Source: Botryllus schlosseri (Eukaryota). From it: a DNA stretch of 64,000 bases. The stretch covers positions 23,126,001 to 23,190,000 of the forward strand of contig CM119380.1 of NCBI GenBank assembly GCA_051294905.1, written 5' to 3'. Positions 1 through 37,800 of this stretch are shown here, one piece after another; positions within the stretch are counted from its first letter, which is position 1; each line of letters opens with the position of its first letter. The notes under the pieces were generated by a model, which saw only the letters and a program-made list of their open reading frames with translations, was not told the DNA's origin and did no database searches. A program made the position numbers and the translations under genes.

Positions 1-1330
1 ATCGACGACACGATGATAAAAAAGTCCGCGAAGGACTTGCCCAGTTGGATGCCACCGCCTGTCGTTACCGTGGGCGAATATTGTGACAAGCATAAGCCGA
101 GTGACTTGGACTCTTTGTACGCCAGAGTGTCATCAAGGACAAAGGGTTCCTCGCCGCATGCTCACGCCACCGGGAGTGTTATTGGGAGGGACGGAAAGGA
201 TGAAATCTCCGCAGGTTTTCTGCGCGGGGCGACTTCGACGGAGTGTATCGCCGACGTATACGCGGTCGTTAACAAAAAAGGTTTCGGCGCTAGGAGTCAG
301 TCGGACAGCAATGTAATCGAGATAAACGGCGACGTGTACGCTGTGATCGCAAAGTCCAACAGTCCGAAACACAAGCGGCCGTACGCGTCCGCTCAGGACT
401 TGCTGAGAGACGATGTTTTCGTCAACAACGAGTCGAACTCCTGCGATACACAGACGGAATACCCGGACGATATGAAATGCACGGGTTATCGCACCGAGTC
501 TGAGAATAGCGATTCTTACGTGACCATGAAAGCACCTGATCACATACTTCGCGATAGGGTTTCCACGCACTCAAACACTTGTAATAACGCACACGCGAGC
601 CGTGTTATAAACTCTTTGTCTCATTCGTACCCATTGTCTGGCGAGATATTAAAGGATATCGGCGGATTGGATGTCTCGCGAACTGGTGCGCGTAACAACT
701 TCGATTCCAGTCGCAGGCGACACGGGGCTTTCGAATCGGAGCTACAAGCACCAGATTGGGAGTCTGTAAATGAACTGCAGGAGATGATATCATCATTGGA
801 TGATGTTACGAACGTAGTGCGTTGCCGCGATAACAAAGCGCTTTCCGTTGGCCGTGATCCAATCGAGGCCGTGTCCTCTCAAGAGAGTATTATGTCAGTT
901 GGTGGTAACGGTCGTGGTGGGGAATTGGGATTCGGGAGGCCTAGAAGTCGACATCTTGTCAGCCCGCAGGAGAGCATGCTTAGGAAGGCGAGGCAGAAAG
1001 AGCCGTTACCTACCCCTCCCACGTCAAGCCCGACGCACGAAGGGGGGAGGAGAAACCGTAGGGGCAGCTCTGGGAGGAGAAAAAAGACTACGGTTAGGGA
1101 GTCTCTGCCCCCTCCACCCACGCCACCACCCCCGAATATATCCCCGCCTGTACGCCGAGCTCGGCCCGTGGATAACCGGCTCGTACCGGATTCGAATCGT
1201 ACTCTGCGATCAGAAAAGCGCTACGTTTCCGAGTCACCTTCTTATGATAAATCAAGTACTATTGGATACGGCGTTGAAAGTACTAAATCGGATACCGCTG
1301 TAATAGCGCGAAGCAAAAGCATTCGTAACA
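1..1330 (+). CDS. Large low-complexity exon, probably spliced into FAK upstream of the Y397 exon (5'-partial)
   Basis: Frame is open from base 1 to a perfect donor aac a|GTAAGT at 1331. The donor is phase 1, compatible with the phase-1 acceptor at 4838. Ser/Pro/Arg-rich, with PLPTPP, PPPPTPPPP and YVTM. FAK membership is inferred from position and phase. Confidence 0.65.
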
Positions 1331-1371
1331 GTAAGTAATTCGATTTGTTTGTCCCGCGCGTTTGTATATAC

Positions 1372-34800: not shown

Positions 34801-37800
34801 TCCTTCGTGTTTTAGTGTCATCTTGGACAAGTTGGAGCGCGAGCAAGCGGACAGACTGCGATTTGAACAAGATGAACCCCCGCCTAAGGTAAGCACGTGT
34901 GCTGTATTTAAACGCAGTCGGCGTGTCAATTTTCTTAGGTTTTGTTGGCAAAGAATTCAGCTGTCAACGGTACTCCTCGGAAATTGAATACGCCTACGAT
35001 GTCACAATATCTATAATTTCGCTGCACGCCCGTGCGACTGATCAGCGATTGGTTTTTCCGAGATAAGACAACTTACTGCACGTGCACACAAAGAGTTGGA
35101 TAATCCTCGCTGTGTTGTATTATGCTCCCGTCGTAAATAGCGTCATCAATTAATTTCAATACGAACTAATTTCATGTTGCAACGTGAAATTAGCGCCGTT
35201 TACCGCATTTTTACACTCGGAGATGCGCGCGCCAGGCACTGTATTTTGCTGCCGGAAACTGTTGTCAATAAGTGGCAGCTGCCCTTTCACCAACAATAGC
35301 GGATTGCGGATTTTACACCTCTCCTTTAACGCGTATCTGACAATGTTTGTCCTGCTCGCGGAGTAGGAGTGCTCACTGCTCACACGTCTGACACTAGTGG
35401 GCTTATTCAAGACGAATTGCAGTGCGTGATTGACATCAGGTTACTTGTAGCTCAGGGCAGGCAACCTTTTCTTACCAACTAACCATACGTGATTACGCAG
35501 ACTTTGAACAAAGCGTTTTGAGTCAGGCCGTGACCAGGTGTATGATTTTTCCGTTTATATTTTTTGGGCGATTTCGACATCTGTTACGTCAGCGGGAAAA
35601 TTCGGTTGACGAATAGTAGATACGTTGAGCGTGATGCGTGCGTCAAGGTGAACGCTCCGCGTACAGGTTTTTATATCAGCGGCAGACAGCAATCATACAA
35701 GCGCTCACGTAACCGGTGCACTCTACGTCATCTCAGCAGACTGGCGCTTTAAAACTCTTTTCCGGCCATTAAATCATGTGCAGCGAATGAATAGCGATGC
35801 GATGTGGCTTTGAGGAGCATTCCCAATAGGAACTTGTTGACAGTATCGAGAATTCGCGCCGAGGCCCGTTTACGGCTTTGGTTGGGGTCGGCGTGCGTTT
35901 CCTGTGTGGCTTTCCTTCGCTGTGACGTGACAAGTGTTATTAACTGCGTTACAAGCGATTTGACGCTAGCGGTTGAGAATCGTTTTGGAGTTGTATGGGG
36001 TGTTGCAGTTGCAGTGAGCAGACCTTGCTGATTTTGCGGATGAGTTGAGATCGTGTGACAAACGTCTGGGTATAGGAAGGATAAAAGAATGATTCAGTCT
36101 ATGACGAGACAGCTTACGACCTTGTTGGATTGCGATTCTTGTCCGAACAACGTAGATGGAAATTCAGTATTGCGAATGTCCTTCGATAAATGCCACGAAT
36201 TTCCTTGGTTAAATACCACGATTTTCGTAAGCTTTACGGAGAAAAGACCACTGTTATTACGCTTGATATCAGTAACCTCACTGAGAGTATTCGCATTCTA
36301 ATTCACTCGAATGGATTCTAGACTTCAATGGGCGGCCGTGAAATCTTGTTCAAAATCAGTGTTGGTGCGGACGCATCCGCTGATTCCATTTCTTACAATC
36401 CACTTTAGTCATGCCCAGCGCTTTGTTAGAAGCCAGGACCGCTTCAACCAGGCGCGATTTTGCAATAGTAAAGTACCGGCGCGTGACATTCGGTAGATCA
36501 TCAACTTTCGGCACAAGTACGCTTACGCCGTGCATTCGATAGCTTTCGAGTAGGTTCGCGGTTAGCAATAATCGCATGAGATGTAGTATGATATTGTAGT
36601 TGTTTATACTTTGTATAGATATTTATCAAGGTAGTAAGAGCGCGCTGTGTTTACCCACCTGTTCCGACGAAATGTAGAGGACATCTTTCGAAAAGTTGTT
36701 GCAGGGCGCGCTTACACAGGGTTGGATTTAGAGTCCGTTTGTTATTAGATCAGTTCTTGTTAGCTACGATTTCACTTTGGTTTCTGTGTTGACAGTCGTA
36801 TTCATAACATTACGGCGCAGTTTAGGTACAAATATGAGGATGTCGGTTGTGATGCCGAGTCAAAGCGGTACCGACAAGGCCGAGGTAGATATGGAAGAAT
36901 TGGCGAAACTGGACGAAACCCTGCAGATGCTAGCGCAGGTGTCGCTGTCTCTGCGCACGGCGCGCCCTTCCTTGCGGCGAAAGCGTTCCAGCAGAAAAGC
37001 AAGCTTCAGAAATAAGGAGCAGTACGACACTCTGCCTAGCAAAATCACTCAGCACACCCCGGCACCGTTTAGCTACACGCACGGGCCCGTCGCGTTTCCC
37101 TGCGATATCGCGCAGTACGCCACCGTAGTCCGCGCGCCGCGCCGCAATAGCGCGGGTAAAATCACGAAACTAACCCGACACAGGCCGCACTTGAAGGGAA
37201 AGGTGAAAATTGAATACGCCCGCGGGTTTGAGGCTAAATTTGAGAGCGAAGTGTTATCGCGTATATTTCCTTATACAGCCCAGCAGGCCGGGATATCCGA
37301 AAGACAGTCCGCGCTCAAGCGTCAATCATCCCAACGGTGGCTATTCGCGAGGCACGCCAGCGGTGCCGCCGAAACAGAAAGTGTTCACTCCGGAGGTAAG
37401 TCGGACTAAAATTTTTCAGCTTCATCAAATTAGATTAGAATTATAGCTTGTTTTTTTTTCGACTTAGATTTGAATTACTTAATTTTGGAAAGCTTTTTCG
37501 AATTCCGAAATACAATAAAAATCGGATATCTAGTTTAAGATCTATCTAGTCAAAGATATCCCTGGTCGGTCGTTAGACGCTCGCGTTTTGCGCGGGTACG
37601 ATCACGTGACTATGCGTTCAGGAACTGGCCAACCACGAAGCGCAGGAGAAGTTGCGGCAGAAGCAAATGGAGGAGGTGCTGCTCCAGCAGACGCTGACGC
37701 AACAGCAGCGCGAAGCGGCCGAAAACGAGAAATGGCTTCAGCAGGAGGAACGGAACTTGGTAAGCGCGCATGCTACGAAACGATATTCAACCGATCGCCG

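Follow-up and report, generated by a model that had tools for sequence, protein, structure and literature searches.

FRNK and N-terminally truncated forms of FAK are, to our knowledge, known mainly from vertebrates, and the private leaders that they carry there are non-coding or very short. Here we describe a FAK locus with four open reading frames (ORFs) in its introns, ORF1 to ORF4, each ending at a splice donor whose phase fits the next FAK exon. The DNA analysed, referred to throughout as the window, is a stretch of 64,000 nucleotides (nt) from Botryllus schlosseri (C10:23126001-23190000, in a 495-Mb animal genome assembly), whose plus strand carries the linker, kinase and FAT parts of the gene; negative coordinates denote DNA upstream of the window start. 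On balance, we favour the reading that the ORFs serve as alternative first coding exons, each with a promoter of its own within a FAK intron.

In vertebrate PTK2, the intron that follows the kinase exons contains a separate promoter for FRNK and a leader exon that is not translated; the leader is spliced to the first post-kinase exon, and the protein retains the proline-rich regions and FAT (PMC1570463). ORF3 resembles this leader in that it lies in the homologous intron and fits the homologous exon in phase. The difference is in what the leader encodes. Whereas vertebrate FRNK is translated from a Met within the shared exon and its leader does not code for protein, ORF3 is a conserved coding frame of 604 codons with its own ATG, a helix and a VYAxVRK motif. 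The paralogue of FAK also has a kinase-less C-terminal isoform, PRNK (PYK2-related non-kinase), and a human hippocampal transcript, BC028733, is without the first 14 exons, starts in the intron 5′ of the Y397 exon and has an in-frame intronic ATG; the 135-nt extension, whose ATG is 60 nt upstream, is confined to primates in the data given there (PMC1570463). ORF2 has the same architecture as BC028733, but instead adds 698 conserved codons. PRNK itself has a short unique N-terminal peptide of a few residues, as against the hundreds of residues in the tails found here.

Alternative FAK exons 13, 14 and 16 (boxes 28, 6 and 7) flank Y397 and preserve phase, giving cassettes of 6-28 residues in full-length neuronal FAK (PMC1570463). 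These are coding insertions near Y397, in the same intron as ORF1 and the ORF2 extension, whereas the ORFs run to 450-700 codons and begin with ATGs; the comparison is one of position, not of sequence. Long disordered scaffolds of the p130Cas, Gab and IRS type carry clustered tyrosine and proline motifs and work in a phosphorylation-dependent way. The likeness of the tails to such scaffolds is a functional analogy: none of the four ORFs matched Pfam, and the tails, unlike separate adaptor proteins, would form part of a polypeptide with FAK modules.

That the gene can use internal promoters and alternative sequence at both of these places is already known (Corsi et al. 2006, PMC1570463). The present locus differs in its private 5′ sequences, which are long, conserved coding frames. 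Under the reading that we favour, a transcript beginning with ORF1 would be spliced to the Y397 exon at 4838 and ORF2 would run directly into that exon, in each case giving a FERM-less, kinase-bearing FAK. Transcripts beginning with ORF3 and ORF4 would encode kinase-less, FAT-bearing proteins of the FRNK type, ORF3 doing so in the same intron and onto the same exon as the vertebrate FRNK leader. Each isoform would receive a private N-terminal tail in place of a non-coding leader, and with it docking sites of its own. If vertebrate FAK is a guide, forms that lack FERM should be freed from autoinhibition, and the FAT-only forms should compete with FAK at adhesions; the labels ‘activated FAK’ and ‘inhibitory FRNK’ would be carried over from vertebrate biochemistry in the same way. 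A wider proposal, which we put forward more tentatively, is that the FAK locus of this lineage, and for ORF3 that of at least one much more distant taxon, may be a modular isoform generator, with intronic promoters, coding leaders and private docking tails of 120-700 residues that carry Y397-like Y-A-x-[IV] sites. FRNK-type regulation would then be pre-vertebrate, and an original coding leader would have been reduced to a non-coding exon in vertebrates.

The canonical exons were rebuilt by combining splice sites and their phases with homology to the order of the vertebrate protein. Matches to Pfam FERM_N_2 and FERM_C_FAK1, which together identify a FERM domain of the FAK type, lie 4-11 kb 5′ of the window and share the strand of the kinase. 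In the last of the FERM exons the peptide includes ...ADLIDGYCCMV... and has the terminus ...SLIVRTVI at the donor IDGYCCMVLNLTKSLIVRTVI/GTGAGT (a slash marks the splice boundary), in phase 0 and ~4.25 kb before the window start. The boundaries of the PR1 linker exon are tttcag/NKRELPPPPMGGVSPTVEASPVRSLSRRINKNLMSS at the acceptor and G/GTAAGC at the donor. This exon is kept in a very distant relative as NNRELPPPPNEGGPGPPTVEASPVRSLSRRITAKSLMSS, with identical phases, and the last FERM exon of that relative also ends in phase 0. One candidate assignment, in which ORF1 was a 5′ extension of the canonical PR1 exon and 970-1330 was taken as PR1, is ruled out by the true 109-nt exon further upstream, with its phases 0 to 1.

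The 54-nt exon that carries the autophosphorylation site has the motif (S/T)(D/E)DYAEI, given as conserved in FAK and PYK2 (PMC1570463) and invariant in the relatives compared here. Its acceptor at 4838 lies within ORF2 and, judged from the conservation of the DNA around it, is real: in the tract CGTTCTTCTTTTCC...YAG, synonymous positions are identical in three lineages that are otherwise saturated synonymously. The acceptor is in phase 1, as is the donor of the PR1 exon, and the join gives ...LMSS/E/TDDYAEI; the arrangement is that of vertebrates. A conserved phase-0 acceptor was sought inside the end of ORF2, and none was found. The Y397 exon joins the kinase exon at 5973 (...GEGQFG), and the last kinase exon (10683-10742; donor GG/GTGAGC, phase 2) joins 34816. 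When compared with solved structures, the kinase-exon peptide matched FAK1 (E 1e-18) ahead of PYK2 (6e-10), and the Focal_AT match is spread over three exons (40731-42003), each of which passes the cut-off. There is thus one FAK gene here, of the PTK2 type and in its invertebrate form, and its canonical mRNA consists of the FERM exons, the 109-nt PR1 exon, the Y397 exon, the kinase exons, the exons at 34816 and 37279 and the FAT exons. The canonical linkers are of ordinary length. All four ORFs fall in canonical introns, ORF1 in the one between the PR1 and Y397 exons.

A first-pass annotation of this DNA had described four long, Ser/Pro/Arg-rich ORFs in FAK introns, each with a donor phase-matched to the next exon, two joining before the kinase and two after it. 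All four ORFs and all four donors are where it had placed them (Table 1), with ORF1 and ORF2 leading to the Y397 exon and to 5973, and ORF3 and ORF4 to 34816 and 37279. The donor phases (1, 1, 2 and 0) equal those of the canonical donors that they would replace. The description itself needs some adjustment: ‘long’ suits ORF1-3 (452, 716 and 604 codons) but not ORF4, which has only 123 codons, and the composition agrees only loosely, at 10-15% S, 5-9% P and 13-19% R+K. Together with ORF4, ORF1-3 are the sole sense-strand ORFs of at least 150 amino acids (aa) in 1-38 kb, apart from an out-of-frame ORF of 151 aa (848..1303) inside ORF1. ORF2 and ORF3 are single copy in the genome, and GC content is raised over the ORFs. 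The predicted peptides at the junctions of ORFs with FAK exons are ...SIRNKTDDYAEI, ...LSHSGVILDKLE and ...HLKGKPSRPGYP.

Homologues of ORF2 and ORF3 were found as stop-to-stop frames on genomic contigs, and they span 502-897 codons. Those of ORF2, three in number, are 87%, 51% and 31% identical to it and share many invariant blocks; those of ORF3 are 41% (contig L014) and 28% identical, and there is also a weak but motif-true one. The homologue of ORF1 comes from the most distant species (contig L005, 3998-4942); it has EDPYATI.D right after its ATGs and repeated [LVM]Y[AS]xV, and its donor, A/GTAAGTAATT, is identical to that of ORF1 and in phase 1. Between relatives, the proportion of nonsynonymous differences (pN) is 0.27-0.45 for ORF2, against a saturated proportion of synonymous differences (pS) of 0.80-0.81; for ORF3 the values are 0.31-0.49 against a saturated 0.78-0.80. 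As synonymous sites are saturated (pS 0.78-0.81 overall), a numerical dN/dS ratio would be meaningless. Donor and phase are conserved in two taxa for ORF1, in three for ORF2 and in four for ORF3. The ORF3 homologue lies 5′ of the same VIL(D/E)... FAK exon in contigs L014, L015 and L016, with a phase-2 GG/GTA or CG/GTA donor. L016, a Logan contig of run DRR090687, holds an ORF3-like frame of 568 codons (82-1788) that shares the helix region and VYAVVRKQK with ORF3, and its FAK exon (2409-2477, reading VILEDFEKQLDERHKLEAGPPPK) lies ~620 nt downstream. Since L016 is from a much more distant organism and has the ORF3 arrangement, the arrangement would predate the window's own group.

Codon usage was scored as a log-ratio trained on the other ORFs, with 83 stop-free stretches elsewhere in the window as the null. 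In frame, the four ORFs reach +0.16 to +0.22, and out of frame their scores are negative, while the best null stretch reaches 0.07; the value for ORF1 is +0.17, and that for ORF4, +0.22, lies above all 83 null stretches. Taken with the homologues, this marks ORF1-3 as genuine coding sequence under protein-level purifying selection, since the protein is constrained and frames of 600-900 codons cannot stay open by chance. By the same comparison, they have been in the FAK locus since before the split from the distant relatives. For ORF4, it is codon usage that points to coding. The first-pass annotation had made its proposal depend on conservation in related genomes, and for ORF1-3 this is borne out: the frames are open, and donors and phases are kept.

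The 5′ ends of the ORFs bear on whether these are first or internal exons. The first ATG of ORF3 (32854) is immediately 3′ of a TGA, and a second Met codon, ATGGAC at 32899, is conserved in four taxa. The start ATGGAY, with a purine at -3, is found in four taxa, which have in-frame stops 0, 2, 8 and 8 codons 5′ of the first ATG, and no phase-2 AG after the start is conserved among the taxa compared. The first 30 residues are conserved as well as the remainder. Two conserved non-coding blocks of 70-84% identity lie upstream (Table 1), of which the nearer, 32406-32636, is a candidate core promoter region. In the 41% relative, the DNA just 5′ of the ORF3 ATG is better conserved than the coding sequence, despite the saturated synonymous sites. 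The start, its Kozak context, the upstream stops and the conserved DNA all fit an intronic promoter that drives a first coding exon, placed where vertebrates have the FRNK leader, and ORF3 is very probably an alternative first coding exon with a putative intronic start of the FRNK type. When the DNA 5′ of ORF1 and ORF2 was compared with that of the most distant relative, conserved non-coding blocks were absent, a result that is uninformative at that distance, and the observed/expected CpG ratio is at least 0.9 everywhere, which gives no promoter signal.

Two further conserved elements were noted around ORF3. A 66-nt non-coding block at 28878-28943, deep in the 24-kb post-kinase intron, is 80% identical to a relative. 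The intron between ORF3 and the next exon (34668-34815) and L014 9613-9777 share the exact 13-mer GGAAATCGCTTGC, which may be a splicing signal.

Table 1. Exons, intronic ORFs and neighbouring features of the FAK locus, in window coordinates unless marked otherwise
Feature	Coordinates	Strand	Description
PR1 linker exon	-3610..-3502	+	109 nt; NKRELPPPP...LMSS; phase 0 to 1; outside the window
ORF1	ATG at C10:23125974 (27 nt before position 1) to 1330	+	452 codons; donor A/GTAAGTAATT (A/GTAAGT), phase 1
ORF2	2743..4891	+	716 codons from ATG, unbroken into the Y397 exon; donor C/GTGAGT, phase 1; would join 5973
Internal 3′ splice site within ORF2	4813..4837	+	Polypyrimidine tract CGTTCTTCTTTTCC...YAG
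Y397 exon	4838-4891	+	Canonical, 54 nt; autophosphorylation motif (S/T)(D/E)DYAEI
Kinase-domain exons	5973..10742	+	Kinase motifs at 8.5-10.7 kb, including CW..DP..RP
Conserved non-coding block	31037..31619		1.2-1.8 kb 5′ of ORF3; ~70-84% identity to L014 (blastn, MAFFT)
Conserved non-coding block	32406..32636		220-450 nt 5′ of the ORF3 ATG; ends in shared TTTAAAAG; candidate core promoter region
ORF3	32854..34667	+	604 codons + 2 nt; donor GG/GTAAAC, phase 2; would join 34816
First post-kinase exon	34816..34888	+	Phase-2 acceptor fits both the last kinase exon and ORF3
ORF4	36834..37202	+	123 codons from ATG to donor AAG/GTGAAA, phase 0; would join 37279; contains QYATVV
PR2-region exon	37279..37395	+	Phase 0; fits 34888 (...EPPPK/PSRPGYP) or ORF4
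FAT exons and stop	40731..42129	+	Pfam Focal_AT; TAG at 42127-42129
LRR-Ig-TM receptor gene, 5′ exons	1286..2285	-	LRR_8 match; further exons at ~-292 to -3092

Reads and contigs from one bulk RNA-seq run and three contig sets (X1, X2 and X3) were mapped to window -699..5300, the region of ORF1 and ORF2. Several observations weigh against alternative first exons. No splice junction, transcription start or peptide was observed for any of the ORFs. The bulk RNA-seq run has zero reads on ORF1 and ORF2, and the canonical Y397 exon likewise has none. In X1 and X2, introns are covered no less evenly than ORFs, which points to DNA or pre-mRNA background in those sets. Single-sequence, profile and exhaustive representative protein searches did not find an annotated or transcript-derived protein with ORF2 or ORF3, although this is not evidence of absence; the matches in protein collections were stop-to-stop genomic ORFs only. 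ORF4 has no comparative support, as the relatives' contigs stop short of it. Phase-compatible AGs are present near the 5′ ends of ORF1 (13 nt before position 1) and ORF2 (2705), and the same intron in vertebrates holds cassette exons (boxes 28 and 6). Junction reads for ORF1 and ORF2, which the first-pass annotation had put forward as a check, were not seen in the region covered, where the Y397 exon itself is without bulk reads; likewise the joint tables show no junction at the ORF donors and were swamped by a repeat at 5012-5215. Metagenome scans with the ORF2 and ORF3 alignments found no relatives.

The third contig set is RNA, since it includes a contig of a neighbouring antisense gene spliced at a 57-nt CT..AC joint. 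It covers part of ORF1, and its cover of ORF2 starts 73 nt 5′ of the ATG, after 385 nt without cover, and is unspliced across 2705. These coverless 385 nt separate ORF2 from the 5′ end of the antisense gene, a layout compatible with a divergent promoter, although contig ends cannot prove a start. Of the words sampled from both ORF regions, 0.2-0.6 occur in runs guessed to be RNA, and these runs contain much more of 32.7-38.7 kb than could come from the canonical exons alone. The X3 cover and the word counts are weak hints of ORF transcripts. A jump in depth at the bin of the Y397 exon was not used, as it may stem from contigs reaching the repeat at 5012-5215.

The most serious competitor treats the ORFs as internal exons of full-length FAK, either cassettes or exons lengthened by far-upstream 3′ splice sites, so that a FERM-containing FAK would acquire giant linkers. 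ORF1 would then be a symmetric exon of 448 codons (phase 1 to 1) from the AG at -13 to 1330, and 2705 would be the entry to ORF2; both would be inserted between the PR1 and Y397 exons, as are vertebrate boxes 28 and 6, but would be far larger. ORF4 would be a cassette flanked by 34888 and 37279. ORF1 and ORF2 have suitable phases, the frame is open from 2705 to the ATG at 2743, vertebrate alternative exons 13 and 14 occupy the same intron, and some invertebrates carry long insertions in the kinase-FAT linker (PMC1570463). In-frame entry to ORF3 is impossible, however, with stops 0-8 codons 5′ of the conserved start and no conserved phase-2 AG after it. The candidate acceptor of ORF1 is a weak AG with a poor pyrimidine tract, and in the relative the stretch from the upstream stop to EDPYATI is free of phase-1 AGs, so that the motif can be translated there only from local ATGs; neither the AG at -13 nor that at 2705 is positionally conserved in the relative. 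Codon usage also changes at the ATGs. The 29 open codons 5′ of the ORF2 ATG score -0.07, in the lowest 0.7% of equal-size windows inside ORF1-3, and the 34 open codons 5′ of the ORF4 ATG score -0.18, under 0.1% of such windows, whereas the first 30 codons past the ATG are coding-like in both (+0.23 for ORF2 and +0.28 for ORF4). The stretch from 2705 to 2743 and the DNA 5′ of the ORF4 ATG are non-coding-like in this respect, similarity to the 87% relative collapses 5′ of the ORF2 Met, and the X3 contig is unspliced across 2705. We therefore consider internal exons rather unlikely as a general account of the ORFs, although such use may still apply to ORF1, ORF2 or ORF4. ORF1 and ORF2 are probably alternative first exons, and for ORF4 we put the chances of this as even.

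It has also to be considered that the ORFs might be independent nested genes, unspliced, unrelated to FAK and ending at the stops that lie 1-2 codons past the donors (TAA after 1330, TGA after 4891 and TAA after 34667). The absence of any observed splice would agree with this, as would the finding of only stop-to-stop genomic ORFs in protein collections. However, GTAAGT and GTGAGT donors inherently contain stop triplets, and the consensus donors, with their phase, are shared by two to four taxa that are very distant. In addition, ORF2 includes the FAK autophosphorylation exon and the ORF3 homologue is always directly 5′ of the same FAK exon, and we regard nested genes as highly improbable. ORF4 taken alone could be a functionless open frame that arose by chance and was lengthened by overlap with a real exon in another frame. 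It is only 123 codons long, ~0.15 stop-to-stop frames of such a size are expected in the window by our own estimate, and no homologue was examined, as the relatives' contigs end before it. Against chance are a codon score that beats every null stretch and flips sign at the ATG, the in-phase consensus donor, and a Y-A-T-V motif as in the other tails; a chance origin of ORF4 seems to us quite unlikely.

AlphaFold models of ORF2 and ORF3, built on four-sequence alignments, predict that both tails are largely disordered. The predicted local distance difference test score (pLDDT) is <50 at 650 of the 716 residues of ORF2 and at 493 of the 604 residues of ORF3, in which there is one confident helix of 63 residues (residues 116-178, nt 33199-33387). 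The motif Y-A-x-[IV], the class to which YAEI of Y397, a Src-SH2 site, belongs, occurs four times in ORF1, where 0.1 are expected. Elsewhere it occurs once in ORF3 (VYAxVRK, invariant in four taxa) and once in ORF4, and in ORF2 it is Y397 itself. The tails had been described in the first-pass annotation as adaptor-like, with YxxP, YxxM and PxxP motifs. That picture holds in part: PxxP is enriched in ORF2 (12 against 5.8 expected) and YxxP in ORF3 (4 against 0.6 expected), to which the Y-A-x-[IV] of ORF1 can be added, while YxxM is not enriched in the ORFs. Conserved motifs include VYAx..., KLKKKLGxYxFWKPK and EPWYRKKCxxFDYxIP.

If the ORFs are indeed alternative first coding exons, FAK isoforms made from internal promoters would be ancient, and a Y397-like site and a helix, both absent from vertebrate FRNK, could allow the kinase-less form to bind partners of its own. 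FERM-independent FAK signalling would then be a regulated, encoded state and not a laboratory truncation. The blocks upstream of ORF3 would be candidate regulatory DNA, and gene models at the FAK locus need long-read support.

The intron between the PR1 and Y397 exons also contains a complete gene for a leucine-rich repeat-immunoglobulin-transmembrane (LRR-Ig-TM) receptor, nested antisense, with ORF1 inside one of its introns. The exons of this gene and their interleaving with FAK are kept in a very distant relative, and its 5′ end faces the start of ORF2 across ~385 nt. In the intron after the Y397 exon, the element of ~200 nt at 5012-5215 has thousands-fold cover in RNA and contig runs. With its many variant flanks and inverted joints, it looks like an abundant dispersed repeat, similar to a miniature inverted-repeat transposable element (MITE) or a short interspersed element (SINE). 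A search of the window against Rfam gave no match. About 10 kb past the FAK stop, on the minus strand (52680-54428), there is an intact ORF of 582 aa with a match to DDE_1, a transposase domain of the pogo/Tigger type (E 2.5e-20), and a Cys/His-rich C-terminus.

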